Sequence record: MH383160.1
Length of the DNA: 64,000 bases
Direction: 5' to 3' (one strand)
Part shown: piece after piece, positions 45,628 through 63,752 of the stretch
Position numbering within the stretch: the first letter of the stretch is position 1
Layout: each line of letters begins with the position of its first letter
Notes under the pieces: model-generated
Databases searched by the model: none
What the model was told of the DNA's origin: nothing
Seen by the model: the letters and a program-made list of their open reading frames with translations, nothing else
Program-made: the position numbers and the translations under genes

Positions 45628-45657
45628 ATTATATCACAAAGAATCGGAGGGTGTCAA
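45628..45657 (-). promoter_or_regulatory. sigma70-type promoter
   Basis: TTGACA-N18-TATAAT with TG extension. Confidence 0.8.
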
Positions 45658-46885: not shown

Positions 46886-46890
46886 TTGTT

Positions 46891-48225: not shown

Positions 48226-48421
48226 ATATTCTCTTCTGGATTAGTTCCTGTAAGTGCTGAATATAACCCTTCATTGCAACATCCTGTTTGTTAGAGCCAA
48301 CGAAGAACAAGAGCTTAAAGTCATGGTAATCCATTTTTGGTTTAGTAGTGAACCATATGTCCCACACTGCACTCACAGTTCTCATGTATTCAATTCGATT
48401 AAATGTTTTTGAATACTTCAT
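48203..48421 (-). CDS. LGTxxQE family mini-protein
   Basis: LFFVGSNKQDVAMKGYIQHL. Confidence 0.75.
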   Translation of the reverse strand: MKYSKTFNRIEYMRTVSAVWDIWFTTKPKMDYHDFKLLFFVGSNKQDVAMKGYIQHLQELIQKRIYENNRPK

Positions 48422-48935
48422 CGATGTTCATCGCCAATAAGTTAATATACAAATTACTGTTAAATGCTATCTGCAATTCCATATAGAACTGAATGATAGC
48501 ATAGTCAGGGTCAGTACACGATAGTTGAAAGCACTGTTCTTCAAATGAATTGTAATTGTACTTAGGGATGTGAATTTCACGCTTCAAATCAGGTTGACCC
48601 CACTTCATCGCGTACACACCAATGTTATTGTTCTTTTTCCTTTTCTTAAATGTTAATTGTTGAATATTTCCTGCGTCATCCAGGAAAATAGTATTATTCG
48701 ACACAGGTGCACCAATAGAAAACAATGATGTATCAATTACGTGTGTCGCACGCACCTCACACTTCTGGAATGCCCCAGTACCCTGTAATACATAATGAAA
48801 ATTGTACTTCTCATTAACAACAGTACTAGGATCGATTAAACCAGTACTGCATTTTTTGAGTACTGGTACAATGGTGCGAATCTTTTTTGATAAATCTTGT
48901 AATGCATCAAAGTCATTGATGTTAACTTTCATCAC
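48399..48935 (-). CDS. FQ-module family protein
   Basis: FEEQCFQLSCTD. Confidence 0.8.
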   Translation of the reverse strand: MMKVNINDFDALQDLSKKIRTIVPVLKKCSTGLIDPSTVVNEKYNFHYVLQGTGAFQKCEVRATHVIDTSLFSIGAPVSNNTIFLDDAGNIQQLTFKKRKKNNNIGVYAMKWGQPDLKREIHIPKYNYNSFEEQCFQLSCTDPDYAIIQFYMELQIAFNSNLYINLLAMNIDEVFKNI

Positions 48936-49381
48936 TCGAATGTAGCCTCTTCAGTAGTAACAAAATTGGTTAGTGTATCCAGTTCAGCAGTGTCAAGATA
49001 AAATACATCTAGTACAGATTTCTGATATATTACACTGAATGTGCATAGATTGTCAAGTGTTCCTTGTTCATAAACAGTACTACCCTGGAAGTACCCTTCT
49101 TCAGTACTCAGGGATAAAATATCTGAAATTTTAAAAGATTCTTCAGTTGCATGTCTTTCTATATTAACTATATTGCCGTTTCGGTTCAATGAAATATAAT
49201 CGTATGCTAACTCAATTAGACTATAATTATCCGCATTAGTGTCAAATAAAGCGACAATTTTTCGTCTCAATCTCTCATCGTGATCATGGTTTTCATCAGC
49301 TAAGTATTCAGGATTTTCTTTGAAGAATTTAACGACGCGTAGAATATCATTTGCTTTCTTGATTGCACTTTCGTAACTCAT
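48932..49381 (-). CDS. FQ-module family protein
   Basis: TEEGYFQGSTVYE...FYLD. Confidence 0.8.
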   Translation of the reverse strand: MSYESAIKKANDILRVVKFFKENPEYLADENHDHDERLRRKIVALFDTNADNYSLIELAYDYISLNRNGNIVNIERHATEESFKISDILSLSTEEGYFQGSTVYEQGTLDNLCTFSVIYQKSVLDVFYLDTAELDTLTNFVTTEEATFE

Positions 49382-49686
49382 AATAATTCAACCACTCCAT
49401 CTCTAAAGTACATATAACTACCACCATTGGATACTGTGAATTCTATTGTCCCCAATAATATATTATATTTTTTTATTTCACATGTAGTACTTGTAGTGTA
49501 AGGCTCACCATCTCCTAAGTACATTGACATATGACATAGAACTTTTCTACCAGCATATTTCTCTTCAAACGATTGTTCAAAACTATGCATAATTTGATTT
49601 AAAGCTGAAATGTAATTAATAAAGTCAGGTATTTCTGTCAATGAATTATAAACCGTACAAAGTGAATCAAATTCATTTTTAGTCAT
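49378..49686 (-). CDS. small helix+barrel family protein
   Basis: FEEKYAGRKV. Confidence 0.7.
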   Translation of the reverse strand: MTKNEFDSLCTVYNSLTEIPDFINYISALNQIMHSFEQSFEEKYAGRKVLCHMSMYLGDGEPYTTSTTCEIKKYNILLGTIEFTVSNGGSYMYFRDGVVELL

Positions 49687-50000
49687 TATATTTCTATCTC
49701 AATGTAATCCTGTGTGATTAAATAATCCCAATGATACTTCACCTGCTTTTGTAATTCAATTAACGTAAAGAAGTTGATCGATTTATCCCATACGAGCGAT
49801 TCCTGGAAAATAAATGATTCATGTTCATCGTAATAATCACACTCTAAAAAATCAGGTATATATTCACTATCGTGAATGTATTCAACAAACGAACTAGCTT
49901 GGCATTTCTTTACTACTAGTAATAATGAATTATCATGATCAAACAGATACAATAAACTAATTTCACCAGGGACGTACTGAACACTGAATAAGTTTTTCAT
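49686..50000 (-). CDS. FQ-module family protein (short type)
   Basis: ESFIFQESLVWD. Confidence 0.8.
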   Translation of the reverse strand: MKNLFSVQYVPGEISLLYLFDHDNSLLLVVKKCQASSFVEYIHDSEYIPDFLECDYYDEHESFIFQESLVWDKSINFFTLIELQKQVKYHWDYLITQDYIEIEI

Positions 50001-50449
50001 TCTATACCTTCTGGATCTTTACGAAGTTCTTCGAAATCCAAATAAAATCGAGGACAGTTAACACTCTTTAAGTACCACATAATAACTAATGCTTCAAGTA
50101 CTTCATCATCGTAAACAGTACTGTTTTGGAAGTAATACTCTTCACTATCCCACGGACCTTCCAGTACTTCATAATTCAAAATTAATGGTTTTTTGCGATT
50201 AATAAAACGAATGCTACCATTTTCAACATAACTAATAAATTCTGCATCTCTATTGTATTCAGAAAACGATATAGGACTATTGGAATTCAACCCAAGAATA
50301 ACCCTTACACCAACGGAGTTATTATACATTTCATCCTTGTAGTAGTTGCCGTTCTCGGCTTTGTACACTTCTTTGAACTTTCCTGCCTTTATATCGTCAA
50401 AGTATCCATGTAGTTCTTTTGCTTTTTCAAGAGCACTTTGTAATGACAT
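49997..50449 (-). CDS. FQ-module family protein, recent-expansion copy 1
   Basis: MSLQSALEKAK...GPWDSEEYYFQNSTVYD. Confidence 0.85.
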   Translation of the reverse strand: MSLQSALEKAKELHGYFDDIKAGKFKEVYKAENGNYYKDEMYNNSVGVRVILGLNSNSPISFSEYNRDAEFISYVENGSIRFINRKKPLILNYEVLEGPWDSEEYYFQNSTVYDDEVLEALVIMWYLKSVNCPRFYLDFEELRKDPEGIE

Positions 50450-50915
50450 TACCTTCTCCTACAGTATTCTCTACATATTCATAATCAAAATAGAAACTAC
50501 TGGAGTCAATACTTTTGAAATACCACATAATTACAATAACATCTAATTCTTCTTCATTGTACAACGTACTATTCTGGAAGTAATATTCTTCACTATCCCA
50601 CGGTCCTTCCAGTACTGAATAAGGAATGATAGTGTCATCAGCATCACTATCTGTGTTGTAGATGGTAATATCTTCATTACGGCAATAACTAATGTACTGA
50701 TTGTACATATGATATTCACAGTTATCACTGTCACCAGTATCAGTGTGCAGTACTAATGTTTCTGCACATATCTCGGACTCGTCATAATCGTCACGGTCTT
50801 TTACAAAAAATTCAGTATCAGATGTTTTATACACCCCAGGTACTGAACCTTCCTGTACCATAATCATGTACTCATGAATCTTCTTTGCTTCTTTCAATGC
50901 ACTTTGTAACGACAT
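50427..50915 (-). CDS. FQ-module family protein, copy 2
   Basis: GPWDSEEYYFQNSTLYN. Confidence 0.85.
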   Translation of the reverse strand: MSLQSALKEAKKIHEYMIMVQEGSVPGVYKTSDTEFFVKDRDDYDESEICAETLVLHTDTGDSDNCEYHMYNQYISYCRNEDITIYNTDSDADDTIIPYSVLEGPWDSEEYYFQNSTLYNEEELDVIVIMWYFKSIDSSSFYFDYEYVENTVGEGNVITKCS

Positions 50916-51358
50916 TACAAATCCCCTGTACTTAAATATTCACATGCTCCCCAGTCAAGAAAAAATGGTTCAAACTTCAATTCCTTAAAGTACCACAAAA
51001 CAACCAAGGAATCAAGCATTTCTTGGTTAAAAATAAGACTCTGTTGGAAGTAATACTCTTCAGTACCCCACGGGCCATCAAGTACCCCGAAGTCAACAGG
51101 TGTATTTGATGTGTCAAACGTAATCTTAGTACCTGGAATATATACAAAAAAACTAGTATATTGACTACATGAAGAGTACTGTATAGTATTGTCTTTATCC
51201 TGTCCCATAAGTAAAATATCATCAGAGTATGTCTTTATACCTGATAGATAATACTCATCACCAAATGCACTTACTTTATCACCATAGAACCCACTTTTTA
51301 TGTTATCGTGGAAGTGATGTATTCTGTGTGCTAGTTCAAGTGCACTTGCTAAACTCAT
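50915..51358 (-). CDS. FQ-module family protein, copy 3
   Basis: GPWGTEEYYFQQSLIFN. Confidence 0.85.
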   Translation of the reverse strand: MSLASALELAHRIHHFHDNIKSGFYGDKVSAFGDEYYLSGIKTYSDDILLMGQDKDNTIQYSSCSQYTSFFVYIPGTKITFDTSNTPVDFGVLDGPWGTEEYYFQQSLIFNQEMLDSLVVLWYFKELKFEPFFLDWGACEYLSTGDL

Positions 51359-51825
51359 ATATCCTCTTTAATAACTCGTAGTAGATCCAAGTCCAAATAG
51401 AAGCTAGGACAATCTGTATTATTAAAGTACCACAGAATGACAAGCTTGTCAAGTACATCTTCCTCGTAGATAGTATTCTGCTGGAAGTAGTACTCTTCAC
51501 TTCCCCAGTCATTATCCAGTACTGAATACGGAAGATGTTTCTCTGCTGCACCAGATATAATGTCAGAATCTTGTATTAAAATATCAGCATCACGACAGAA
51601 GTACATGTAATTATCTTCCAAATTAACATCACACCCATTGAGTGTTGTTTCAGAAGAATCTAAGTTTTCTTCATACATGTGAATGTACTCACTACTGTCA
51701 TCGTATCTCATTCGACAATAAGATTTACCTTCCTTGAATAGATATCCATTAAGACAATTTGCTACAATTTCTTTGCTGCATAAATCAATTAACTTCGCAA
51801 TCTCTAATGCTCTTTCTAAACTCAT
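51355..51825 (-). CDS. FQ-module family protein, copy 4
   Basis: NDWGSEEYYFQQNTIYE. Confidence 0.85.
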   Translation of the reverse strand: MSLERALEIAKLIDLCSKEIVANCLNGYLFKEGKSYCRMRYDDSSEYIHMYEENLDSSETTLNGCDVNLEDNYMYFCRDADILIQDSDIISGAAEKHLPYSVLDNDWGSEEYYFQQNTIYEEDVLDKLVILWYFNNTDCPSFYLDLDLLRVIKEDI

Positions 51826-51826
51826 T

Positions 51827-52318
51827 TCAACCCCTGTTAATACCGTTATCTACAGTTTTCTTTACGTATTTGTAATCGAAATAGAAGTTCCCAGAACCAA
51901 TACTTTTAAAGTACCACATAATTATAATAACATCAAGTACTTCATTATCATATACAGTACTTTGTTGGAAGTAATACTCTTCACTATCCCACGGACCTTC
52001 CAGTACTTCACTCGGAATTATAATGTCATTGGAATCGCTGTCAGTACTGTTGATGGTATCTGTATCATTAATATAGACCATGTACTCATTATGCATATTA
52101 ATGAAGCATTCATAATCATTAGGGTCGGTATCTAGTATGCACGTTTCTGTATCCAGTACGCACGTTTCTGTATCTGAGCAGTCATTATAAAGGAGGTTAT
52201 CCGGTACATAATATTGAGTACTTGTGTCTTTGAAAACACCGTAAACTGAACCTTCTTTTGCCATATTCATGTACTCATGAATCTTCTTTGCTTTTTCCAA
52301 TGAACTCTGTAATGTCAT
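51827..52318 (-). CDS. FQ-module family protein, copy 5
   Basis: GPWDSEEYYFQQSTVYD. Confidence 0.85.
   Translation of the reverse strand: MTLQSSLEKAKKIHEYMNMAKEGSVYGVFKDTSTQYYVPDNLLYNDCSDTETCVLDTETCILDTDPNDYECFINMHNEYMVYINDTDTINSTDSDSNDIIIPSEVLEGPWDSEEYYFQQSTVYDNEVLDVIIIMWYFKSIGSGNFYFDYKYVKKTVDNGINRG
52133..52174. repeat. 21-bp tandem duplication
   Basis: TAGTATGCACGTTTCTGTATC / CAGTACGCACGTTTCTGTATC, encoding DTETCVL-DTETCIL. Confidence 0.85.
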
Positions 52319-52327
52319 TTTATAATC

Positions 52328-52687
52328 TCATATATTGAAATAATAATTATTCGTTCTTGATGGGGATGGATTAAATACGTTTTCTTTTTCAAATCTCTTC
52401 ATTTCATTTTGCAAAGAAACCATTTCTTCAAATGTACAGGAGTACTTATTCTTATCAAACACTAATGCAGCCTGAAATAGTTCGCCATCGTCCAGTACTG
52501 TATAATCTATAAGACTCTCAGATTCATAGTCATAGTCGTCATGTGATACATGAATAAATTTAAAACAAGAATCTTTGTAATGCATATATAAACTCAACTC
52601 ATGTTCCGAGTCGCCCTTAATAAGATTACAGCACAAGTCCCATCCTTTAGGTAACTTATAATAGTACATAGAATAATCATATGTCAT
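52328..52687 (-). CDS. FQ-module family protein (short type)
   Basis: DDGELFQAALVFDK. Confidence 0.8.
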   Translation of the reverse strand: MTYDYSMYYYKLPKGWDLCCNLIKGDSEHELSLYMHYKDSCFKFIHVSHDDYDYESESLIDYTVLDDGELFQAALVFDKNKYSCTFEEMVSLQNEMKRFEKENVFNPSPSRTNNYYFNI

Positions 52688-53043
52688 TCTTGAATTCCTA
52701 AATTGAATTTGTATTCTTGATTAATACTTGCATTGGGTTTATGCAAAGCAGCATACTCTTTCATTTCATTTTGTATTGCAATAACTTCTTCAAATGTACA
52801 CAAGTACTTCTTATCAAATACTAATGATTCTTGGAATAGTTCTGCGGTATCCATTAATGTATAGTCCGGCATATCTTGGTGTGGATACTGTAATGAACTG
52901 TAATCAATGAATGTAAATTTACCCTGAGTGTAATGAATATACTCATTCGCACTGTGCATTAAATCACCTTTGTTTAAATTACAAAAGTACTGATAACTGT
53001 GCTTGAAAGTATGTACTGATATTAAAAAATCAAATTCCATCAC
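52684..53043 (-). CDS. FQ-module family protein (short type)
   Basis: DTAELFQESLVFDK. Confidence 0.8.
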   Translation of the reverse strand: MMEFDFLISVHTFKHSYQYFCNLNKGDLMHSANEYIHYTQGKFTFIDYSSLQYPHQDMPDYTLMDTAELFQESLVFDKKYLCTFEEVIAIQNEMKEYAALHKPNASINQEYKFNLGIQE

Positions 53044-53417
53044 TCTTCTCCTAGATTAAAAAATTTCCAGAAATCGGCCTCACCAGTACTGCACCAGATA
53101 TCTATACATTCCCTGTGAATACATTTAATTCTACGCTGTAATTCAATCATCTCTTCTAATGTACAGATGTACTTCTTATCAAATACTAATGCCTCCTGGA
53201 ACAGTGCAGCATCATCAAGTACTGTATAGTCCGGCATCTCGATAGATATCCCATGAAACCCAGTACTAAAATCCATCAAATAAAAGTCAGCATTCCAGTA
53301 CTTTAAAATCTTGTCCCTAGCGTAGTTTAAATCACCCTTGTATAAGTTAGAGTGCGTAACTAACTCACCAGTGTACATCCATGTCCTTGCACAAAATTCA
53401 TTATATTTTATTTCCAT
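53040..53417 (-). CDS. FQ-module family protein (short type)
   Basis: DDAALFQEALVFDK; start reassigned to MEIKY. Confidence 0.75.
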   Translation of the reverse strand: MEIKYNEFCARTWMYTGELVTHSNLYKGDLNYARDKILKYWNADFYLMDFSTGFHGISIEMPDYTVLDDAALFQEALVFDKKYICTLEEMIELQRRIKCIHRECIDIWCSTGEADFWKFFNLGEE

Positions 53418-53468
53418 CTTAATCTCTACTATAATTAATAAGGTAAACTCCAATATAAGGAGCACGTT

Positions 53469-53596
53469 GCGGGGGCGGGGTATTTTTTGTTTCAGGAAAC
53501 ATGAACTGTACTCTGAAAAACACAATANNNNNNNNNNNNNNNNNNNNNNNNNNNNNNNNNNNNNNNNNNNNNNNNNNNNNNNACCCCCCTGCGGCC
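53469..53596. repeat. G-rich/C-rich imperfect inverted repeat flanking an N gap
   Basis: GCGGGGGCGGGGT at 53469 and ACCCCCCTGCGGCC at 53583. Confidence 0.45.
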
Positions 53597-53614
53597 TGTA
53601 AAAATGAAACGTCT

Positions 53615-53824
53615 CTATTTATTCAGCCTAGAAAGCTTGATTTCTTCAATCCTTTTCATCGCACAAAGCCTTCGACTCGTCATCTCGTATAAATTCAATA
53701 CTCGGTGTACCGTATTATCTACACTCTGAACCAAATATGTATCCTTCAAAATCAAATCCATCATGTATTCAAAACCCTTAATACTATGCGAACTTAACAC
53801 TTCCGGCTCTTCAAACGTAATCAT
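53615..53824 (-). CDS. small hypothetical protein
   Basis: 69 aa. Confidence 0.6.
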   Translation of the reverse strand: MITFEEPEVLSSHSIKGFEYMMDLILKDTYLVQSVDNTVHRVLNLYEMTSRRLCAMKRIEEIKLSRLNK

Positions 53825-54041
53825 AATTCCAATCCCCTATCCCATCTAACCTTCTAAGATATCTTGCGTAAATTATTTCGAAATATCTGTGCAACGAAAT
53901 TACGGATTGCTCATAATCATCATTCCTGTACATTGTGCATGTAAGAAAATCATTTAACCCAAAATCTAAACTGCACTTGAACTTCTCCTTTGCAATATCA
54001 CTATTACTTGCACTTTTCATAATAAACCCTTTGTACCGCAT
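53811..54041 (-). CDS. small hypothetical protein
   Basis: true start likely MKSAS. Confidence 0.6.
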   Translation of the reverse strand: MRYKGFIMKSASNSDIAKEKFKCSLDFGLNDFLTCTMYRNDDYEQSVISLHRYFEIIYARYLRRLDGIGDWNYDYV

Positions 54042-54180
54042 TGGTGTACTGTGAACTCAGCACCACTAATAGGTAATCTATATTGTAAGCACGATTTCCT
54101 CGTTGACTAGCACGGCTGGAATAAAGAATATTATCCACATATGTATTGAACTGATCTTCAAATAACTCTTTCATCAGCAT
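54004..54180 (-). CDS. small hypothetical protein (not in ORF track)
   Basis: 58 aa MLMKELFEDQFNTYVDNILY... fills the gap. Confidence 0.55.
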   Translation of the reverse strand: MLMKELFEDQFNTYVDNILYSSRASQRGNRAYNIDYLLVVLSSQYTNAVQRVYYEKCK

Positions 54181-54195
54181 TATCCCATCACATAA

Positions 54196-54819
54196 TCATA
54201 CATTAACAACTTTATCGATGTAATCTTCTAACATATCAATATATCTGGTATTGGTTCTAACTAAAAGGTATGCAAATCCAGAGAACTCATGTGTATAATG
54301 CTTTACAGCGTACATACAACGAAGCTTATCATTGTCATACATTGTACTGTACTGAAACAAACTCTCGTCTGATAGCTCTAATAACGCTTGGGCTTCACTT
54401 CTCGTGAACTTCATAGGGTCATGTACTGCATCACAAAAACAAACCTGTGTCTCGCTATTGAAACCCTGTGATAGATATATACCTTCACACTCTGAACGCA
54501 CCGATACTGCATTATAACTATGTGTTGCCCCCATCATATCTGAACTCAAAACTAAAATCAACCCATTTTTATTTTTAATCAACAAATCTGACTTAAGGGA
54601 TTTGATCTCCGTATGGGAAATATCACCAAATCTTCCTGGGACTTCAAACTTATCAACGTTGTATACAATCTTTTGTACTTGCTCTTTTAAACGCTTAATT
54701 GCACTTCTGTCTTTTTCTAATGTATCTAATAAACTCATTGAACTCATTGTGCTTTCCTTACATATTTGTACCGAACAAAACGGAACTTTGAATGCCATTA
54801 ATCGACACTTCATGTACAT
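54196..54819 (-). CDS. FQ-module family protein
   Basis: SDESLFQYSTMYD; true start likely MSSMSL. Confidence 0.8.
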   Translation of the reverse strand: MYMKCRLMAFKVPFCSVQICKESTMSSMSLLDTLEKDRSAIKRLKEQVQKIVYNVDKFEVPGRFGDISHTEIKSLKSDLLIKNKNGLILVLSSDMMGATHSYNAVSVRSECEGIYLSQGFNSETQVCFCDAVHDPMKFTRSEAQALLELSDESLFQYSTMYDNDKLRCMYAVKHYTHEFSGFAYLLVRTNTRYIDMLEDYIDKVVNV

Positions 54820-55102
54820 ATATATTTTGTCTGAACAAAGGAACTAATTGAACTAAACTCGTTTGCATAATAATATGCATATGTACATTGTCATATGCCG
54901 TTTCGTATTGGAAACGTGCAGCTTCATCTTCTATGAAATTCGGAACTTGGACTGGATTCTCAAAATTTGTCCTTGTACTGAACTGTACATCATTGTCCTG
55001 TACCTTAATACCATATGAATTATCATTGTTATCAACTACATCAAATTCAATTAAACTACCATCTTTACTGACGTTTACTATATAAACCGAAAATCGACTC
55101 AT
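54758..55102 (-). CDS. FQ-module family protein (short type)
   Basis: DEAARFQYETAYD. Confidence 0.75.
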   Translation of the reverse strand: MSRFSVYIVNVSKDGSLIEFDVVDNNDNSYGIKVQDNDVQFSTRTNFENPVQVPNFIEDEAARFQYETAYDNVHMHIIMQTSLVQLVPLFRQNIYVHEVSINGIQSSVLFGTNM

Positions 55103-55647
55103 AAACCTATTTCCTCTAAATCTTTGACAAATGTATCATAATCCGATAATGACAAAAATATGTCTGTACTGATGTTTTGACGTAATGTATTAAACAAATT
55201 ATGTACCTGTAATAAATCAGGTGCATAAATCAGGGATTGCTGGAAATACGATTCTTCTGTATCTAATATATCCCTGCACTCAATTTCACGAACTCGTTGG
55301 TATATTGAATTTAATAATACATTTTCATCTTTGAGCATTGGAAGGTATCGGATGTACATGTGCTCCATCAACTCATCCTGGATTGAACCCCTGAACTGCA
55401 ACACGTATTCAAAACACATCACTACATCTTGTAGGTAATTGGCACTGTAATTATTGCTGTAAACAATCTTATGACTTCTGAACTCATCATCATTTCTGAA
55501 CCAATTGTCACCTACTTTGGTGTACTTATGACTAAGCTTCCCATCCTCCAACGCTCGAATGAACTTCATAATGTTAATTGCAAAATCATATGAATGATGC
55601 TTGTGTTGATGCATTTTTACCTCAATTCTGTCCGAAAAAATAACCAA
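55099..55647 (-). CDS. FQ-module family protein
   Basis: TEESYFQQSLIY. Confidence 0.8.
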   Translation of the reverse strand: MVIFSDRIEVKMHQHKHHSYDFAINIMKFIRALEDGKLSHKYTKVGDNWFRNDDEFRSHKIVYSNNYSANYLQDVVMCFEYVLQFRGSIQDELMEHMYIRYLPMLKDENVLLNSIYQRVREIECRDILDTEESYFQQSLIYAPDLLQVHNLFNTLRQNISTDIFLSLSDYDTFVKDLEEIGL

Positions 55648-55816
55648 AATGTTTAAAGCAAGAAAGCATTACTATGTTCATCACTCTATCATCAAATTCA
55701 TCTTGTGTTTCTGCACATAATGTTTCACAGATATTCAAATGTAATAATTCAAGCTGGAAACTGTCGGTGAACCAATCAAACTTACGGTATTTTTGTTTAA
55801 CATCAACTGTAAGCAT
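55622..55816 (-). CDS. small hypothetical protein (possible LGTxxQE relative)
   Basis: LCAETQDEF. Confidence 0.6.
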   Translation of the reverse strand: MLTVDVKQKYRKFDWFTDSFQLELLHLNICETLCAETQDEFDDRVMNIVMLSCFKHFGYFFGQN

Positions 55817-55817
55817 A

Positions 55818-56441
55818 CTATATATCCAACCCTTTTACAACATCTACGAAATGTTCAAACACTTCTTTTGAAAAATAACCACCTTCACAAAAAAGCATAC
55901 TAAACGGTGGCAGCATGTCCGATAACTCTTTAGCTAAATTGATTTCTGCTCTTAACTCTTGAACATCAATGATATCATGTACTAAAGATAATTGAAACAT
56001 GAATGCATCTACATCTTCATTCATTTCTGAATTGTAATATAACTCTTCAGGGAATTTGTCGGTTTCGTAATAATAAAAAACTTTATTGTTGAACACACCA
56101 CTAATAGGAACATCATTTTCATCTTTCTTTGAAATGTTTGTTTCCCATGACTCTATATTATTAGGAACAAAAAAATCATAGGCTGACTTTGAACCCTGTA
56201 CTGAATCCAACTTTATTCCATAATATTCCGTATCCATGTATTTCTGCTGTAATGTAATACCACGTGTACTGACATTCACTTGGAATATATCATCTTTATC
56301 TGGAACACTAAATGGAATACATAACACTGAATTCTCAGGGTATTTGGCAATGAATGCATCCAGCACTTTATTAAGCACTGGAATGGCAATTTTACTGTAC
56401 TGCATCAAATCATACATTTTAATTCTGGTCATATCATTCAC
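55818..56441 (-). CDS. FQ-module family protein
   Basis: DAFMFQLSLVHD. Confidence 0.8.
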   Translation of the reverse strand: MNDMTRIKMYDLMQYSKIAIPVLNKVLDAFIAKYPENSVLCIPFSVPDKDDIFQVNVSTRGITLQQKYMDTEYYGIKLDSVQGSKSAYDFFVPNNIESWETNISKKDENDVPISGVFNNKVFYYYETDKFPEELYYNSEMNEDVDAFMFQLSLVHDIIDVQELRAEINLAKELSDMLPPFSMLFCEGGYFSKEVFEHFVDVVKGLDI

Positions 56442-56973
56442 CTGTGTATGTTTTCACCCTTAGCGATTCAAAATCCCATACATCACTGATTGTACCATTG
56501 TGCCTGTAATCATAATATTCTACTAATACATTATACAATAACTTCAACGATACAAATTCATGATTCCACGGAGCTTTATTGTCATGAACACATTTGGTGA
56601 TATAAGGTATAATATATAAACTAAACAACACTAATGGTGAATGTATACATTGCATTTGAAAATATTCTTCTTCTTGCATACAATGTTCAGGAATAATTAG
56701 ATCATAATGTGTCTCAAATAAATGTAAACCTATTGTGGTTTTTTTCGTATCACATGCGTACCATATTGTACTATCCGAAATAAATGGAATGATACCATTA
56801 TTGTTTGCAATGTACATCATATGGTAAGAGCGATTTGTCTTGTTAAATATCTCGATACTTTCGATATTACTACAAATCATGTATTCAAGGCAATCAATGA
56901 TCTTATCTTTAAATGTACCAATTTCATTGAATGACATTGCTTTCTGTACTTTTGATACTGTTGTACTGCTCAT
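56434..56973 (-). CDS. FQ-module family protein
   Basis: QEEEYFQMQCIHS. Confidence 0.8.
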   Translation of the reverse strand: MSSTTVSKVQKAMSFNEIGTFKDKIIDCLEYMICSNIESIEIFNKTNRSYHMMYIANNNGIIPFISDSTIWYACDTKKTTIGLHLFETHYDLIIPEHCMQEEEYFQMQCIHSPLVLFSLYIIPYITKCVHDNKAPWNHEFVSLKLLYNVLVEYYDYRHNGTISDVWDFESLRVKTYTGE

Positions 56974-57512
56974 ATGTTCTCCTTAAAAAAATCCAAATAC
57001 TCTTCATTGAAAGCATATGTATCATCTTTTTTGTTATGCACCACATAATCATAAAGAGCTATGAATGCAGGGATTATGATCTTACATGATTTATTATTGT
57101 ATTTGTACTGCTCCAAATCAACGGTGTTCAATTTAGCAATAAGCATAGCAGCAAAGATATCTTCATGGCGGTGTACTGTGCTGTACTGAAAATACTCATC
57201 CTCTCCAATATCGGGATGATATAACGGTATAACCAAATTATTACGAATTGACATTTTATATTTTTGTAATGCAGCTAAATGCATGAACCACAATCTATCT
57301 TCATGGAAAGATGGAAAAATAATTTTGTCTGTGCTAATAAAAATTTCTTCATTTCGATTATTTGTCACAAGAGGTGCATACATTTTAATTTTTGCAGATT
57401 TAATAATTAAATTAAAAATATAATGAATCTTATGAACTGCACTTGATGCATCTTCGTATGTACTTGGGATTATGAAACTCACTATATGTTCTCCTTTAAA
57501 ATGAATACACAT
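56970..57512 (-). CDS. FQ-module family protein
   Basis: GEDEYFQYSTVH. Confidence 0.8.
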   Translation of the reverse strand: MCIHFKGEHIVSFIIPSTYEDASSAVHKIHYIFNLIIKSAKIKMYAPLVTNNRNEEIFISTDKIIFPSFHEDRLWFMHLAALQKYKMSIRNNLVIPLYHPDIGEDEYFQYSTVHRHEDIFAAMLIAKLNTVDLEQYKYNNKSCKIIIPAFIALYDYVVHNKKDDTYAFNEEYLDFFKENI

Positions 57513-57564
57513 GATAACAGCTTTGGTCTTCTATGTCAATACCAAAACGAAAAAAGCCCATATC

Positions 57565-58071
57565 TTACGATACAGGCGTTATGGGCATGTTGATTTGAAT
57601 TTCATTGTACAAATCATCAATATATAGACATGAAAAAAATACACTATCTTGTACTATATTGTTGTGATAAAGCATTTTAAATACTACATAAAAAAATAAA
57701 TCAATATCATCGTGGACTAAATTCTGCTGGAACCACCACTCGTCTGTTAAATCTTGTGCATTAAAATCATCAGGAACTTCAATGAACGACATATCACAAT
57801 CTTCTTTGTACTCAAACCACATGTCGTCATTCGGATAACGTTCATGCTTCTCTGGGTAACAATTGCTGGGATTAAATGTTAAAATATTAAACCCCGTAGA
57901 GCAACGTTCTTTATTTAAAAATGTATTATTCCATACCTGATATTTTTCACCAACATCAAGCTCTTCTGTTACTGATTTTATTGCACATAATGTACTGTAT
58001 ATTGTTTCTATCTTGTGAACATATTTAAATGCAGCATCTAAGCTGAACTCTAAATCATACATGTACTGCAT
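57565..58071 (-). CDS. FQ-module family protein
   Basis: TDEWWFQQNLVHD. Confidence 0.8.
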   Translation of the reverse strand: MQYMYDLEFSLDAAFKYVHKIETIYSTLCAIKSVTEELDVGEKYQVWNNTFLNKERCSTGFNILTFNPSNCYPEKHERYPNDDMWFEYKEDCDMSFIEVPDDFNAQDLTDEWWFQQNLVHDDIDLFFYVVFKMLYHNNIVQDSVFFSCLYIDDLYNEIQINMPITPVS

Positions 58072-58391
58072 AAAATTACCTCAACTAAAGCAAGGACTGT
58101 ATTGAATTCCACTATACTTGTAATTCCTTGAAGGTACATGTACTTTGCTACTACATATTTCTGTACTAAATTATAATTATTAAATTCCTCAAAATTGTAA
58201 TTTAGAACATAATCTGTACTCAAAAATATCTTATGCATCTCTAATGCACTTTGATAATACGCGTACAACTCACGGATATCAATACTGGTTAAATTATATT
58301 GTTCATATCTATGATACGGGATGGCTTCAATTTCAATACTATAAAACCATTCTCTTAACTTATTAATATCAAATGTATTATTCAGCTTCAT
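58050..58391 (-). CDS. hypothetical protein
   Basis: 113 aa; NFEEFNNYNLV weakly FQ-like. Confidence 0.65.
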   Translation of the reverse strand: MKLNNTFDINKLREWFYSIEIEAIPYHRYEQYNLTSIDIRELYAYYQSALEMHKIFLSTDYVLNYNFEEFNNYNLVQKYVVAKYMYLQGITSIVEFNTVLALVEVILCSTCMI

Positions 58392-58944
58392 AACTCAATA
58401 CCTCCATTAAACACTCATACACACCGTCAATCGCATAAGCACAAAAATTGAAATTAATTTTGTGATTCTTGTGTAATGGACTATTGTGTACTGTACTCAT
58501 TATGACATTATAAAATAACAAACGCACTGGTACAAGCATTGAACCTTGGAAAAATTCTTCCTCTGATTTATATGTATTGTACTCTATTGCGTTGTTCGTT
58601 TCTTTATCATATGTTACCATTACTAACGGGGCATTTTTATTATACCATGCGTACTCTAAATCATTCTTTCCAATAACAGAACCAGGTGCGAAATCCAAAA
58701 GACCAATAACACTACGGGCATTTGGTATATCTGGTGTATTGAATCGTTTATCAAAATGACTCGTGCACGCAATATATGTATTGTACTTCGATGGAATAAT
58801 ACCAATACATTTGTGGAAATGACGCTTGTGATATTTCTGGGCATTATATAAGGCTGCAACAATACAAGCTAACTTTTGTCCCATAAGGATGGCATTAGCG
58901 TAGGTGTACTGAATTTCATTGCTGGTATGGTACTTCGAGGTCAT
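58378..58944 (-). CDS. FQ-module family protein
   Basis: SEEEFFQGSMLVP. Confidence 0.8.
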   Translation of the reverse strand: MTSKYHTSNEIQYTYANAILMGQKLACIVAALYNAQKYHKRHFHKCIGIIPSKYNTYIACTSHFDKRFNTPDIPNARSVIGLLDFAPGSVIGKNDLEYAWYNKNAPLVMVTYDKETNNAIEYNTYKSEEEFFQGSMLVPVRLLFYNVIMSTVHNSPLHKNHKINFNFCAYAIDGVYECLMEVLSYEAE

Positions 58945-59227
58945 AATATTTCCTTTGCCATATCATGGGCTTAAAATCAATAACAGCTTTCTGTATCTTT
59001 TTTAATAATAAGACATCATAACCACCCGTGTCAATCACTAATTGCTGTTGGAACAATTCTTCATCGGATAATGTATTGAAATCTACAAAATAATCTGTAA
59101 CTATCGAATCATTTAAATGTGCCATGTACCAACCTGAACTTCTTGAATAAATCAAATTCCACCCATCGTCATCATCTTCTAATTCAACATAAATCATATC
59201 TGGGGTATACATCATTTTATACTTCAT
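58916..59227 (-). CDS. FQ-module family protein (short type)
   Basis: SDEELFQQQLVID. Confidence 0.8.
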   Translation of the reverse strand: MKYKMMYTPDMIYVELEDDDDGWNLIYSRSSGWYMAHLNDSIVTDYFVDFNTLSDEELFQQQLVIDTGGYDVLLLKKIQKAVIDFKPMIWQRKYYDLEVPYQQ

Positions 59228-59765
59228 AACTATATCCTTGCATTAATAAATCATAAACTACATGGACTAAATTTAATTGAATATAAAATTTTAAACCTTT
59301 AATTAATGAATTCAAATGCATTGTACTGAATAACATTAGATACATCATCTCATGCGGTTTTGTGATTAATGATTTTTGAAATACTTCAGCTTCATCATAA
59401 GGGTCTATGAACTGAAATTTGTCTTCATCATAATTTGTATTGGAATGCTGATATATAAAATAATCATCATTGGTATTGTACCACAAATATCCTTCGAATC
59501 CTGTACTAACATCTTTGGTCAATGGGGATGCTGATACTGGATTTGAACTGATTAATGCACCTACATCAACAATCCCCGTTGTATCATATTCGATTTCAAC
59601 ATCAATATCAATGTATTTCCTTGCGATATCTGCGTTTATGGACAAATATAAACTACCACCTGTCCTCTGACTCAGGATTCCATCTATCTGCGATATAGGA
59701 TGGTTGTTATTGAGGATAAGCATTATTGTACTTATCTTGTGTGCTAATAACTCTATCTCATTCAT
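59217..59765 (-). CDS. FQ-module family protein
   Basis: DEAEVFQKSLIT. Confidence 0.8.
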   Translation of the reverse strand: MNEIELLAHKISTIMLILNNNHPISQIDGILSQRTGGSLYLSINADIARKYIDIDVEIEYDTTGIVDVGALISSNPVSASPLTKDVSTGFEGYLWYNTNDDYFIYQHSNTNYDEDKFQFIDPYDEAEVFQKSLITKPHEMMYLMLFSTMHLNSLIKGLKFYIQLNLVHVVYDLLMQGYSYEV

Positions 59766-59965
59766 AATTTACCTATCGATGGATACCTAGGATTTGTAGG
59801 ATGTAAAATCCTGTCCTGTACTGAAAGGTGCTCAAATGTAATTAAACTCAAATAATAATCGTAATTATCAATACCACCCTTCAAATGTATATTGTAATAC
59901 ATCTTAATACTATCTAATAATGAATCCTGTAATGCATTTAATGTTATCGTATTAATCTTTTGCAT
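59762..59965 (-). CDS. small hypothetical protein
   Basis: 67 aa, overlapping start/stop context. Confidence 0.55.
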   Translation of the reverse strand: MQKINTITLNALQDSLLDSIKMYYNIHLKGGIDNYDYYLSLITFEHLSVQDRILHPTNPRYPSIGKL

Positions 59966-60171
59966 TAATGTTCTTCTCTTAAAAATCGTTTGATAGCATA
60001 ATCTAAATAAAATTCATAACACATGCTATCTCTGTTCTTTATCCATATTTTGTAATCGGATTTTATATTACTCAACAAATAATTTGTATTAATTGTGTAA
60101 TAATCCAAACGACCTAATCGTGCCATTTGATAGGATACTCCGTTCCATTTATTGTATAAGATATAATCCAT
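59965..60171 (-). CDS. small hypothetical protein
   Basis: true start likely MARLG. Confidence 0.5.
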   Translation of the reverse strand: MDYILYNKWNGVSYQMARLGRLDYYTINTNYLLSNIKSDYKIWIKNRDSMCYEFYLDYAIKRFLREEH

Positions 60172-60524
60172 CCGTAATGAATAGGACTATTCTTTTCTCC
60201 TTTAGGAATAAAATATAAAGATGTACTGGGGTTATAACTGAATAAATCGTTGTTACCAAATGTAAAATGCGATAACTCAATTTTCCTTGTACCTGTACTT
60301 GGACGAAGAGCATTCTTAACACCGAAGACTGTACCTTGATATTTCTCGGAAAATTCAAACAATACATCTGTAATTAAATCACGAAACTCCGCATGTATGG
60401 TTTCAAAAAAATCTATATTACACGATGTTTTAATATCCTTGAACTCATTATAAAAAGCATGTCTTGTATTCAAAAGAAATATTACTTTTTTAAGATCCTG
60501 AACTATTTCTGGATTCATATTCAT
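60114..60524 (-). CDS. helix+barrel family-like protein
   Basis: FSEKYQGTVF. Confidence 0.7.
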   Translation of the reverse strand: MNMNPEIVQDLKKVIFLLNTRHAFYNEFKDIKTSCNIDFFETIHAEFRDLITDVLFEFSEKYQGTVFGVKNALRPSTGTRKIELSHFTFGNNDLFSYNPSTSLYFIPKGEKNSPIHYGWIISYTINGTEYPIKWHD

Positions 60525-60756
60525 TTATCTCATTCTGTAACTTAAGCATCAAAATTTGCATATTAATTTTTTGTAAAAGGTGCTTGATAAATTTCTGTGC
60601 CATTTCTTCTTGTTCTTTTGTACCAAGATAAAATAACAGATTAAATTCTGATAATCGCAAAGAAAAATCTTCATCACCACCCTTTAAACAAAAATCCCTG
60701 TACTTTGTAGCGTACAAATATTGGTTTACCTTTTTATAATACCCTGTGTTTTGCAT
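60490..60756 (-). CDS. LGTxxQE family mini-protein
   Basis: LLFYLGTKEQEEMAQKFIKHL. Confidence 0.75.
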   Translation of the reverse strand: MQNTGYYKKVNQYLYATKYRDFCLKGGDEDFSLRLSEFNLLFYLGTKEQEEMAQKFIKHLLQKINMQILMLKLQNEINEYESRNSSGS

Positions 60757-60944
60757 ACTATCTCCGTTCGCAACGAATTTATATAATAATGAACAAATTG
60801 TTCTTGTGAACGTGTTCCAAGAAAAATAAACATATCAAACTCTGTTGTTTTTAAATTCAATGCATCTTTTGTAAAATTCCTGTTGAATTCCCTGTACTTT
60901 TGGGTCTTCCATTCTTGATTAATTGTCTTGTATATCGATTTCAA
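60726..60944 (-). CDS. LGTxxQE family mini-protein
   Basis: FIFLGTRSQEQFVHYYINSL. Confidence 0.75.
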   Translation of the reverse strand: MKSIYKTINQEWKTQKYREFNRNFTKDALNLKTTEFDMFIFLGTRSQEQFVHYYINSLRTEIVCKTQGIIKR

Positions 60945-61239
60945 TGATTCTCCCTGACATACCTTGTATTAGCTTATCATACATATCGAGCATCACTTTT
61001 TGAATATTAATTAGTACTGGCATCGTGCAAATATCAATGTCGTATACTAAGCTGTACTGGAATAATTCATCTTCCTGCATTTGTACTAAATTAGGTAAAA
61101 GATAATTGTCTGCCTCTTCATCCTGGTACTTGAAATGCATAACACCATCCTTTTTGTACAAAAGAATGTCAATATCACCTAACTCTTCTGCATAACCAAA
61201 AATACATATACTCGATGTTTTTGCTATATTAAATTTCAT
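60919..61239 (-). CDS. FQ-module family protein (short type)
   Basis: QEDELFQYSLVYD. Confidence 0.8.
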   Translation of the reverse strand: MKFNIAKTSSICIFGYAEELGDIDILLYKKDGVMHFKYQDEEADNYLLPNLVQMQEDELFQYSLVYDIDICTMPVLINIQKVMLDMYDKLIQGMSGRIIEIDIQDN

Positions 61240-62045
61240 GATTTATATTGTTCCTTAAAAACACCACAATGATAATTTTTATTGTATTGTGTAATACTAT
61301 AATCACACGGCATTGTCCCGCACGAAGCTCTGTGTTTTAAACGTTCCAATACCTTATCGTAATCTTTACTGAAAATGCCATTTTCATTGGGCGTAGCAAT
61401 CATTAATGCTTGCTCATATAAATCTTTTGTTCTTGTTGAACCATGCGAATGTTTGTTAAAATAAAATACATATTCAACTTCCCAATTACTTCTTAAATAG
61501 GATATTCCGTAATTGATAATCATATAATAATGTAAATCCTTGTAATAATTGAATGTCTTATCTGTATTAATCAAAATATATGAAGAACTATCATTGTCCT
61601 TAATAACAAATAAACGACCAATCTTATTTTCTTTATCTTTAACTAATTGTCTAATTTCATCACCTTCTTCAAATTTACGATGCACTTCAATTACAGATTT
61701 AGCAATCCCAGTCTGTACTAAAGATTCATATGTTGCGTACATAAAATCACTTACATGACCTAAACCAACATCTTCTTTTCTTGGTGTCTCTGTTGTATTG
61801 ACAAACATATTCAATAACTTTTGAATTGAAAAATCAGTACTGCAATCTTTATTAATTTTAATTTTTTCTCGAATCTCTTCCTTTAATGCATTAATATATT
61901 GCTCTTGTGCTGCTTCCTGATAATTTGTACCAAGATATAAACTCAAGGCAACTGAACCTTTGTAAGATGCTGATTTCTTTAAATCACCAGAACTAAATTT
62001 TTTCATAATCAAATTGGTTGCTTCAGATTCTGTTAAAAATTTCAT
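61236..62045 (-). CDS. LGTxxQE domain fused to a ~190 aa C-terminal domain
   Basis: LYLGTNYQEAAQEQYINAL within the first 60 aa of 269. Confidence 0.8.
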   Translation of the reverse strand: MKFLTESEATNLIMKKFSSGDLKKSASYKGSVALSLYLGTNYQEAAQEQYINALKEEIREKIKINKDCSTDFSIQKLLNMFVNTTETPRKEDVGLGHVSDFMYATYESLVQTGIAKSVIEVHRKFEEGDEIRQLVKDKENKIGRLFVIKDNDSSSYILINTDKTFNYYKDLHYYMIINYGISYLRSNWEVEYVFYFNKHSHGSTRTKDLYEQALMIATPNENGIFSKDYDKVLERLKHRASCGTMPCDYSITQYNKNYHCGVFKEQYKS

Positions 62046-62081
62046 ATCATTGTACCTTATCTTAAAATTGAATAGGTAAAC

Positions 62082-62110
62082 ATGTTAACACTATTCAAAT
62101 GGAGTGTCAA
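62082..62110 (-). promoter_or_regulatory. sigma70-type promoter
   Basis: TTGACA-N17-TAACAT with TG extension. Confidence 0.7.
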
Positions 62111-62153
62111 CATTGATCTTCATTCTGTGAATATTAAATTTCATATTATTCTC

Positions 62154-62486
62154 TTATATATTGAATTCACATACGTGTTGAACAAAATTCTTTGGAAGAT
62201 GACAATGTGCAATCATCTGCTGTTGCACTTTCTTCATATCTTCTAATGTAAAACCTAAAGAATCATCGTGTACTAACATGTACTGAAACTCTTCTTCTTC
62301 AGAGATAGAACATAAATTCGGTACTGAAATTGTTTTTGTTTTTCTTGCACCTAATTTCCAATGAAAAGAATTATTGCATTTTCTGTACTCAAATATCTTC
62401 AACCCAGCACCTCTATTAAAATCAGCTACTACAATGTAACATGAATTCTTACGTACAATACAATTAAATTTACGCATTATCTCCAC
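62154..62486 (-). CDS. FQ-module family protein (short type)
   Basis: SEEEEFQYMLVHD. Confidence 0.8.
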   Translation of the reverse strand: MEIMRKFNCIVRKNSCYIVVADFNRGAGLKIFEYRKCNNSFHWKLGARKTKTISVPNLCSISEEEEFQYMLVHDDSLGFTLEDMKKVQQQMIAHCHLPKNFVQHVCEFNI

Positions 62487-62722
62487 CTCTCTCCGTCATC
62501 GCAAGAGTACTGGTACGTTGTCGTTAGGGTAGGGACCATGTTGGTAATGGGCATATTATTAACAATAACCGTAACAGGCATAAGAATCGTCTCTACTCTA
62601 CTCTGTCCTGTCCTTGTGCAATTCATCTTTTGCATTTCATCTGAATCCATGAAATACAATACAAATGGTGCAATCCCAAGAACAATACACAAGACGATAA
62701 GGAAATTTAAAAAATTTAACAT
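62477..62722 (-). CDS. membrane-anchored small protein
   Basis: N-terminal TM helix, C..TG...YQYSC. Confidence 0.7.
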   Translation of the reverse strand: MLNFLNFLIVLCIVLGIAPFVLYFMDSDEMQKMNCTRTGQSRVETILMPVTVIVNNMPITNMVPTLTTTYQYSCDDGERWR

Positions 62723-62751
62723 AATTTTTACCCTATGATTAACGTTAGTGT

Positions 62752-62780
62752 ACTATATCAGTAATGAAAAGTACTGTCAA
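62752..62780 (-). promoter_or_regulatory. sigma70-type promoter with GTAC sites adjoining both boxes
   Basis: TTGACA-N17-TATAGT; GTAC abuts the -35 and overlaps the -10. Confidence 0.75.
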
Positions 62781-62781
62781 G

Positions 62782-63177
62782 CTAGTACTGCACTGTTCTA
62801 ATGAAAGTACCTTTACTCATGGATTTAAGCTTATGAACCTCTTCCTGCATACCCTTAATTAACCCTAAAGGTATAGGTAAATCATGTACTAAGCTGTACT
62901 GAAAGTATTCTTCTTCAGATAAAGTACTAACATCTGGGACTCCAATTTTAGTTAGATAATCTTGATGTGTTGACCAATAAATTATATCTTCAGTACTATT
63001 GTACTCCCCATATACTGAACAATATTGATGAATATCTTTCCTGTACCCTTGAGCAATAAAGAACTTATCTACTGCATTACCAGCATTAATAGAATTCACT
63101 TCTATTGTCACAGTACTTGAGCTTGTATAACTCTTAATATTATCAGTACTCAATAATGTGTTCTTCATAATCACCAT
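62782..63177 (-). CDS. FQ-module family protein (short type)
   Basis: STLSEEEYFQYSLVHD. Confidence 0.8.
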   Translation of the reverse strand: MVIMKNTLLSTDNIKSYTSSSTVTIEVNSINAGNAVDKFFIAQGYRKDIHQYCSVYGEYNSTEDIIYWSTHQDYLTKIGVPDVSTLSEEEYFQYSLVHDLPIPLGLIKGMQEEVHKLKSMSKGTFIRTVQY

Positions 63178-63487
63178 TAGGCTCCTGTTTAGATTCTTTC
63201 ATTAGTACTATCATCTTATGTACTAATGGCATAGGAAACTCTAAATCCCATACTAATGATTCCTGAAAGTATTCTTCTTCAGATAAAGTACTTAAATCTT
63301 TAATATCAACGTGCTTGTATATTTTATTTTCGTAATTAACAAATGATATATATAAATCACTAACATAAGAATCATAGGTAATTGTGAATGGCTTACCCTT
63401 GTAATCCATTACATCTCTACATAGACTACTTTTGATATATGTATGTTCAAATGATTTATATACCTTGAGTTGTATATTAGTTTTCAT
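63143..63487 (-). CDS. FQ-module family protein (short type)
   Basis: STLSEEEYFQESLVWD. Confidence 0.8.
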   Translation of the reverse strand: MKTNIQLKVYKSFEHTYIKSSLCRDVMDYKGKPFTITYDSYVSDLYISFVNYENKIYKHVDIKDLSTLSEEEYFQESLVWDLEFPMPLVHKMIVLMKESKQEPNGDYEEHIIEY

Positions 63488-63752
63488 ATTTCTCTTTATT
63501 AGCTTGTTTTGTTTTATGGTGAATTAAATCTATTAATGTAATCAAGTACAACGTCAAATAGTACTCTTGTTGATCTGTACCTAATGATACAAAGAACTTG
63601 TGCTCATAGATTAAAACCTGTTTCTCTTCAAATGGACATTTAATCCTCTGTATAGGCTTAAGTAAATGATAGTACTTATTAAATCTATGATACATTTCTA
63701 GTTCTGTCAGTACTTTCATATTAAACACGTACTCCATTAGCAGTAGCATCAC
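63477..63752 (-). CDS. LGTxxQE family mini-protein
   Basis: FVSLGTDQQEYYLTLYL. Confidence 0.7.
   Translation of the reverse strand: MMLLLMEYVFNMKVLTELEMYHRFNKYYHLLKPIQRIKCPFEEKQVLIYEHKFFVSLGTDQQEYYLTLYLITLIDLIHHKTKQANKEKYEN

Follow-up and report, generated by a model that had tools for sequence, protein, structure and literature searches.

Why should the commonest hexamer of a bacteriophage genome vanish from one stretch of that genome, and be replaced there by a hexamer that differs from it by a single base? The DNA analysed is a stretch of 64,000 nucleotides (hereafter, the window) from sequence record MH383160.1, which is the genome of Escherichia phage UB, a 350-kb Rak2-like jumbo phage of the genus Asteriusvirus. 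In a preliminary description, made from the sequence alone, it was noted that the palindrome AGTACT is missing from a block at positions 53,303–61,012, where about 20 copies would be expected, and that about 40 copies of TGTACT occur there instead, the left edge of the block lying close to an assembly gap. Two explanations were offered: either a module recombined in from a lineage that had escaped an AGTACT-cutting enzyme, or a functionally distinct region (such as a terminal repeat or an early-entry segment) purged of the site, as in the first-step-transfer DNA of phage T5. The observation proved to be correct, although it described only part of a larger pattern. The interpretation was partly supported: the block is indeed a functionally distinct region of small early-type genes near the terminal repeat, but neither of the two specific forms of the interpretation held.

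Loss of a trinucleotide from one strand

AGTACT occurs 185 times in the window, where it is the most frequent hexamer; base composition predicts about 22 copies, i.e., the hexamer is about eight times as frequent as expected by chance. There is no AGTACT between 53,297 and 61,013. At the rate found outside the block (3.29/kb), 25 copies (rather than about 20) would be expected in 7.7 kb, giving a probability of finding none of about 1e-11. The block contains exactly 40 TGTACT and no AGTACA on the + strand. The loss is not confined to the palindrome: every AGTACN is gone from the block (0, compared with 252 outside it), and the whole trinucleotide AGT is absent from the + strand for 7,641 bp (53,372–61,012), where 136 are expected at the rate found in the rest of the window. 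In contrast, ACT on the + strand is normal. Equivalently, ACT is absent from the sense (−) strand of 19–20 genes, in all three reading frames and in the spacers between genes, and it was removed entirely by synonymous choices. The change from AGTACT to TGTACT is a by-product of this loss. The region at 53,371–61,012 is referred to here as the ACT-free zone.

The 40 TGTACT sites (53,507–60,898 on the + strand; AGTACA on the sense strand) are degenerate AGTACT sites that keep the C...G flanks of the palindrome. They fall in all three frames, and their density of 5.2/kb is equal to that of AGTACT in the neighbouring DNA; the GTACT core on the + strand is about 14 times as frequent as expected by chance. 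Elsewhere in the window, positions 1–53,302 contain 171 AGTACT sites, which lie in all three reading frames of genes on the − strand. On the other side of the zone, at 61,013–63,714, the palindromes return, with 14 sites in 2.7 kb; this region, termed here the centre, lies between the zone and a second AGTACT-free block located beyond the end of the window.

The same gap is found in independently sequenced relatives: it is 7,649 bp long in G17, 7,511 bp in 121Q, and about 7.5 kb (14–15 bins of 500 bp) in TH47. The zone was also found in JNE01 and in contigs from four metagenomes, so it is not a sequencing, base-calling or assembly artefact. In an unbiased scan of all 64 trinucleotides in the G17 genome, this was the only such gap and by far the most extreme, with a score of 150 compared with 25 for the next best. 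A genome-wide examination of the ACT–AGT skew revealed no global pattern, and the two other outlier bins were ACT-rich genes rather than purges. The assembly gap of UB (53,528–53,582) lies in the spacer after the last zone gene. Its flanks map collinearly in G17 (58 nt apart) and in 121Q (57 nt apart), and in both relatives the corresponding position is in an intergenic spacer, so no reading frame crosses it. The true left edge of the zone is at 53,371, inside the next gene, and not at the gap.

Genes and signals of the zone

The zone contains 19 co-oriented small ORFan genes (53,615–60,756, − strand) encoding proteins of 58–207 amino acids, the first of which is at 60,490–60,756 and the last at 53,615–53,824. 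Each of the larger ones matches its own PHROG family of unknown function, and no match was found in NCBIfam or PDB. The predicted structure of the 207-amino acid protein had a pLDDT of 47.6, which is too low to be usable; a resemblance to DUF4303, with a score of 0.86, is a lead only. The codons show how completely the word has been avoided: threonine is encoded by ACT in 0 of 115 cases, NAC is followed by T in 0 of 133 cases, and a codon ending in A is followed by a CTN leucine codon in 0 of 49 cases. As all three frames and the spacers are cleared, a codon or tRNA effect is rejected.

The spacer upstream of the first zone gene (60,757–60,918, − strand) contains a sigma-70-like promoter, identified by consensus match only (TTCACA-16-TATTAT at 60,810–60,783). 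At 57,511–57,577 (− strand), a terminator-like hairpin (57,577–57,556) is followed by a near-consensus promoter (TTGACA-17-TATCAT with TG, 57,539–57,511); a terminator is annotated at the same place in G17. The zone therefore spans at least two transcription units.

Conservation among related phages

The zone is conserved in Asteriusvirus and in Munch-like phages, with a length that varies between lineages from 2.4 to 7.6 kb. In EJP2 and Munch it keeps its position, although the genes within it have no homology to those of the UB zone; a search of IMG/VR for homologues of the zone genes gave only 121Q. In four lineages, the downstream edge overshoots the last zone gene by 200–350 nt, so the edges do not follow gene ends. 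A few ACTs remain in the zones of EJP2, JNE01, Kae01 and Munch; these are located at the promoter-proximal end, and the zone is clean to its downstream end. TCT is depleted 2.4–3-fold in four lineages. Three sister genera that share the enrichment of AGTACT have no zone. Phyletic profiling identified 13 ORFs that co-occur with the zone, all of unknown function.

The reverse complement was examined in the operon next to the repeat boundary. There, AGT is the most depleted sense trinucleotide in Kae01 and Munch and the third most depleted in EJP2 (3-fold, in all three frames), and ACT and AGT also rise on the opposite strands; in G17 and 121Q, however, the depletion is only 0.65x. A strict mirror image of the zone was rejected for the second AGTACT-free block: its 11 AGTACA sites are partly conserved paralogue sequence, and it has no trinucleotide purge in G17.

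Neither a foreign module nor the terminal repeat

Avoidance of a Type II restriction site would deplete the palindrome as a duplex, so that both strands would lose it. Here, only AGTAC/AGT is lost from the + strand, in every context of the trinucleotide, while GTACT stays on that strand at 5.2/kb. Furthermore, AGTACT is enriched 7.6-fold genome-wide, which is the opposite of restriction avoidance. The genome does show extreme avoidance of other palindromes, 22 of 64 palindromic hexamers being absent, but this avoidance is genome-wide and is not a property of the block. Nor does the block carry the signature of imported DNA: it is 99.2–99.8% identical to G17, compared with 93–99% outside it, its GC content is unchanged, and the zone is present across the genus. 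In G17, the direct terminal repeat of 20,668 bp (350,150–370,817) starts 7.7 kb beyond the block (zone at 334,815–342,463), and the repeat has the highest density of AGTACT in the genome (6.5/kb). The block is therefore not the terminal repeat or a T5-like first-step-transfer segment. Although the block lies in the part of the genome likely to enter the cell early, escape from an AGTACT-cutting enzyme is contradicted by these data and is very improbable.

Two other origins were considered for the enrichment of AGTACT itself. A drive resembling very-short-patch repair is not indicated, as the one-mismatch neighbours of AGTACT are not depleted; and an RNA-level origin is unlikely, as the motif is a perfect palindrome with symmetric C/G flanks and sits in all three frames.

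What could have removed ACT from one strand?

The analysis itself establishes that one DNA strand of a 7.6-kb block of early-type genes has been cleared of ACT by nucleotide-level selection, whereas the other strand keeps ACT and dense GTACT; the identity of the enzyme involved, the priming or cleavage activity proposed below and the purpose of the arrangement are inferred. The explanation preferred, weakly and tentatively, is that 5′-ACT-3′ is the word read on single-stranded template by the T4-type (gp61-like) primase of the phage. The primase of T4 reads 5′-GTT/GCT-3′, does not copy the 3′ T, and makes primers of five nucleotides. By analogy, the template 5′-AGTACT-3′ would give pppGUACU, and the palindrome would be the most compact way of placing a full priming site on both strands, i.e., two priming sites back to back, which would explain its enrichment of about 7-fold throughout the Rak2-like clade. 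In this view, the − strand of the zone could not be primed, whereas the + strand would keep near-perfect sites (TGTACT, giving pppGUACA). Forks moving toward the terminal repeat would make Okazaki fragments normally; forks moving from the repeat side into the genome would run for 7.6 kb on leading-strand synthesis alone, leaving the sense strand single-stranded. Together with the second block, which lies next to the repeat and where AGT is depleted on the sense strand (only weakly in UB-like phages), the zone would form a polar pair around a centre of about 2.4 kb. Possibly, this is a built-in source of long single-stranded DNA for recombination-dependent replication, or a one-way valve for forks beside the repeat.

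Several features fit this view. The purged word is three nucleotides long, strand-specific, independent of reading frame and also purged in the spacers, which is the recognition format of DnaG/gp61-type primases (GTC for T7 gp4, with preferred sites of five nucleotides; CTG for E. coli). It is the terminal half of the only enriched palindrome in the genome; if the two features were independent, the chance of this overlap would be 3–6%. AGTACT has the length of one uncopied base plus a T4-type primer, the permissive strand keeps GTACT at full local density with its flanks, and TCT as a graded second site resembles the GTT/GCT pair of T4. The opposite biases in Kae01, Munch and EJP2 resemble the skew of one double-strand motif that changes sign across a centre, the position of the zone is kept where its genes are not, and its edges do not follow gene ends. 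Homologues of gp61 primase and gp41 helicase are reported for the clade (PMC5259590). However, no primase is known to read ACT, no primer-free zone is known in any replicon, no genome is known to enrich full priming sites or to void them on one strand, and the benefit of such a zone is speculative. As ACT occurs every 45 nt by chance, it is difficult to see why AGTACT should need enriching if ACT alone were enough. The mirror block is only weakly depleted of AGT in UB-like phages, where its TGTACT sites are partly explained by conserved paralogue sequence, and the sister genera have the enrichment without the zone.

Nearly as likely, though also tentative, is immunity at the level of RNA: the mRNAs of the zone contain no ACU and so would survive an ACU-specific, ribosome-independent endoribonuclease, either made by the phage for host shut-off or a host abortive-infection toxin, and the roughly 20 proteins would be made while every other message is cut. 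The purge is on the sense strand, which this explanation requires and which the primase explanation obtains only by a 50% chance. It is complete, in all frames and in the untranslated spacers, as immunity to a three-nucleotide mRNA interferase requires (PMC9102682, PMC5408214); enzymes of the MazF family have sites of 3–4 nucleotides, including UACU (PMC10864209, PMC8546651). The promoter-proximal position of the leftover ACTs would be expected if 3′ exonucleases follow a cut, and fits RNA decay better than priming. The sigma-70-like promoters suggest that the zone is read early by host polymerase, and the phage carries genes for RNA repair (polynucleotide kinase and RNA ligase). On the other hand, no ACU-specific RNase is known in E. 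coli, and no RNase-like hit was found in the phage, either among the zone proteins or among the 13 co-occurring ORFs, most of which are ORFans. This explanation does not account for the purged word being half of the enriched palindrome, for the depletion of AGT in the neighbouring operon, for AGTACA being kept at full density, or for the overshoot of the edges; and, as all other phage mRNAs carry ACU every 45 nt, it needs a narrow time window. Less likely is another enzyme with a three-nucleotide site on single-stranded DNA, such as an endonuclease like T4 Endo IV or a DarT-like base modifier, whose target would have been cleared from the strand that becomes single-stranded beside a fixed origin or recombination site. 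The strand-specific format and the bias mirrored across the centre would fit, and there are precedents for short motifs: DarT2 reads TNTC (PMC11543638). T4 Endo IV reads TCA. However, the known DarT motifs do not match, the enrichment of AGTACT is not explained, and the rest of the genome would remain exposed during replication. Mutational erosion, by a process tied to one strand such as error-prone handling of sites always used in one direction, is more doubtful still. The replacements are the minimal synonymous ones (ACT to ACA, NAC|T to NAT|T, and A|CTN to A|TTR), and the length of the zone varies between lineages; but 0 of about 140–160 sites remain in four genomes that are 92–99% identical to one another, the edges are sharp, new ACTs would arise constantly by mutation, and T is chosen in 88% of cases at the first position of the site, which implies selection. 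Among 40 variants in the zone, 1 creates an ACT on the sense strand compared with 2.3 expected, a sample too small to distinguish neutrality from selection.

Comparison with other systems

The absence of a three-nucleotide word from the sense strand in every frame, achieved by synonymous changes, is also the principle of the ACA-less mRNAs used with the MazF interferase for single-protein production, and of the GCU-poor transcripts related to MqsR. Here, the feature is natural, spans about 20 genes and their spacers, concerns a word for which no nuclease is known, and is accompanied by depletion of the complementary word in the next operon. Polar oligomers such as Chi and KOPS have a strand bias that flips at an origin or at dif; those are 8-mers with a genome-wide statistical skew, whereas here a trinucleotide is removed completely, and only locally over 2–8 kb. 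First-step-transfer DNA of T5 and the one-way EcoP15I sites of T7 are also cases in which motif constraints shape a leading genome segment and strand orientation matters, but the zone is outside the terminal repeat and its motif is not a restriction site.

Implications

No published description of the zone or of the AGTACT enrichment was found, and a multi-kilobase, strand-specific, complete absence of a trinucleotide has not, to our knowledge, been described in any virus or cell. The zone gives a simple computable signature, the longest k-mer gap on each strand, for finding similar elements in other genomes. The boldest possibility, which remains speculative, is that Rak2-like jumbo phages have written the grammar of their primase into the genome: AGTACT would be a double-sided full priming site, present in about 1,000 copies per genome, and one lineage would have built, beside the terminal repeat, a kilobase-scale strand with no priming sites, to force one-directional, strand-displacing replication. 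Whichever explanation holds, the zone points to an unrecognised enzyme with a specificity of three nucleotides, acting on single-stranded DNA or RNA. If it is a primase, the zone would be the first cis-acting element defined by missing priming sites, a new kind of replication element defined by the absence of a word, and would also explain a clade-wide hexamer enrichment; if it is an RNase, the zone would be a natural single-protein-production system and a new strategy of host takeover or anti-defence. In either case, it picks out 20 ORFan genes as a functional unit.

Identity and Gene Content of the Window

The block is 100% identical to Escherichia phage UB (MH383160.1) and 92–98% identical to other Asteriusvirus jumbo phages of about 350 kb, including G17, Sharanji, PBECO4 and 121Q. 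The window encodes PhoH, DNA ligase, RNA ligase and polynucleotide kinase, together with long arrays of small genes, almost all of which are on the − strand. The genes for polynucleotide kinase and RNA ligase lie 0.8 kb apart (18,953–21,851, − strand; T4 Pnk/Rnl-like RNA repair), which is relevant if RNA-cutting enzymes take part in this infection. There are two tandem paralogue arrays (43,420–53,525 and 60,919–63,487): one is a 10-member family of about 110–130 aa that lies on both sides of the zone described below, and the other is an 8-member family of about 150–165 aa. Seven of the eight N gaps of the window cluster between 4 and 8.6 kb (4,087–8,636). UB also lacks, at about 53,040, some 445 bp (roughly one small gene) that G17 has at 333,959–334,402.

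A Trinucleotide Missing from One Strand

The preliminary description, in which AGTACT disappears from a 7.7-kb block and TGTACT takes its place, was borne out by the computed counts. AGTACT occurs 185 times in the window and is its commonest hexamer, but none lies in 53,303–61,012, where 25 would be expected (P about 1e-11), whereas 40 TGTACT and no AGTACA lie there. All AGTACN words are missing from the block, with 0 against 252 outside. The sites fall in all three reading frames, so the signal is at the nucleotide level.

Comparison of the k-mers in the block with those in its flanks revealed that the whole trinucleotide AGT is missing from the + strand. G17 has 4 AGT where 158 are expected, and the window has none between 53,371 and 61,012, where 136 are expected. 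On the sense (−) strand this means that there is no ACT at all: Thr-ACT accounts for 0 of 115 Thr codons (132 of 303 in the flank), NAC|T for 0 of 133 (102 of 299 in the flank), and A|CTN-Leu for 0 of 49 (99 of 185 in the flank). Thus, the purge costs no amino acid change. AGTACT became AGTACA on the sense strand because its last three letters are ACT; the site otherwise keeps its density (5.2/kb) and its C…G flanks. TCT on the sense strand is also depleted, 2.4–3-fold, in the zone in four lineages (the window at 53,371–61,012, and the equivalent zones in 121Q, EJP2 and Munch), and is a possible weaker second target of the same agent. One protein of the zone, of 207 aa (55,818–56,441, − strand), resembles DUF4303 families by language-model features (score 0.86), which is no more than a lead; its AlphaFold model was too poor to test the resemblance (pLDDT 47.6).

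Uniqueness and Conservation of the Zone

A scan of all 64 trinucleotides for their longest gap finds only this zone in G17 (7,649 bp, score 150, against 25 for the next best). The same zone is present in 121Q (7,511 bp) and in TH47 (about 7.5 kb). Shorter zones at the same relative place exist in EJP2 (3.9 kb, with 7 ACT left), JNE01 (6 kb), Salmonella phage Munch (2.4 kb, with 1 left) and Klebsiella phage fENko-Kae01 (Kae01). The zone genes of EJP2 and Munch are not homologous to those of UB, so the property belongs to the place rather than to the proteins. No zone exists in KP13-7 (Alcyoneusvirus), CBB (Mimasvirus) or fHe-Yen9-04 (Yen904; Eneladusvirus). Elsewhere, G17 at 210–220 kb and CBB at 130–140 kb show a large local excess of ACT over AGT (G17, +167) or the reverse (CBB, −199), the cause of which is ACT-rich repetitive genes and not a purge.

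As a check on artefact, contigs from four unrelated metagenomes carry the block at about 99.5% identity. One wastewater contig (run X8) has C>T at 56,464, which creates an AGT inside the zone; therefore, the purge is not absolute in the population. The flanks of the N gap within the zone, which was left unfilled, are collinear in two relatives, where the position of the gap is intergenic.

Genome Setting, Edges and Transcription

G17 has direct terminal repeats of 20,668 bp at 1–20,668 and 350,150–370,817, and Sharanji has the same by PhageTerm (PMC11895373). The order along G17 is the zone (334.8–342.5 kb), a centre with dense AGTACT (342.5–344.9 kb), an AGTACT-free block (344.9–350.3 kb) and then the repeat, and all of these genes are transcribed from the repeat inward. 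The AGTACT-free block lies beyond the end of the window, occupies the 5.4 kb next to the repeat boundary (G17 344,904–350,280), and holds about 23 tandem paralogous genes of 70–90 aa. It has 11 AGTACA on the + strand, many of which lie in conserved paralogue sequence, and in G17 it shows no 3-mer purge. However, in Kae01, Munch and EJP2 the operon that starts at the repeat boundary is depleted about 3-fold in sense-strand AGT, in all three frames; AGT is the most depleted 3-mer there in Kae01 and Munch, and the third most depleted in EJP2. Thus, in these three phages one complementary word pair is biased in opposite senses on the two sides of a centre.

The zone starts about 250 nt before its first gene, and in four lineages it ends 200–350 nt after its last gene, inside the next gene. 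It contains a terminator-like hairpin and promoter-like sites, so it spans more than one transcription unit. The ACTs left over in the leaky zones lie toward the promoter-proximal end.

Enrichment of AGTACT

The enrichment of AGTACT is clade-wide, at 6–8-fold in every Rak2-like genus tested (Asteriusvirus, Munch-like phages, Alcyoneusvirus, Mimasvirus and Eneladusvirus). Counts against a reversed-word control are 1034/154 in G17, 903/134 in 121Q, 1312/159 in EJP2, 850/149 in Munch, 954/154 in KP13-7, 1235/187 in CBB, 941/150 in Kae01, 1008/137 in Yen904 and 1000/129 in JNE01. It is absent from the T4-like phages RB18 (28/57) and KVP40 (60/117). The density of AGTACT peaks in the repeat and the early regions, at about 6.5/kb, and falls to 1–2/kb mid-genome. 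The enrichment appears to be unreported; no paper that mentions it was found. AGTACT is the only strongly enriched palindrome in a genome marked by extreme avoidance of palindromes: 22 of the 64 palindromic hexamers are absent from the 350 kb of the G17 unit genome, although each is expected 8–32 times, and 27 are absent from the window, whereas only 1.4% of comparable non-palindromic hexamers are absent. GATC and CTAG occur at about half the expected number.

Interpretation

A complete, strand-specific purge of a 3-mer implies an agent that reads three letters on a single strand. The purge, its conservation and the enrichment of AGTACT are established from the sequences themselves, whereas the activity of that agent, be it priming at ACT or cleavage at ACU, and the identity of the putative enzyme are inferred. 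Two readings can be considered. In the first, at the level of RNA, the messages of the zone are free of ACU and would be immune to an ACU-cutting interferase. This reading has the better precedent and a clear logic, and is favoured by the purged strand being the sense strand, by the completeness of the purge, and by the promoter-proximal position of the leftover sites. In the second, at the level of DNA, 5′-ACT-3′ would be the word read by the primase. This reading is favoured by several links that the RNA reading leaves to chance: the purged word is the end half of the enriched palindrome, the palindrome has the length of a T4-type primer plus one uncopied base, the other strand keeps full sites, and the reverse complement is depleted in the neighbouring operon of Kae01, Munch and EJP2. 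Both readings are tentative and are rated as nearly equal, with a slight preference for the DNA reading, in which 5′-ACT-3′ would be the primase word of these phages, because it ties the observations together.
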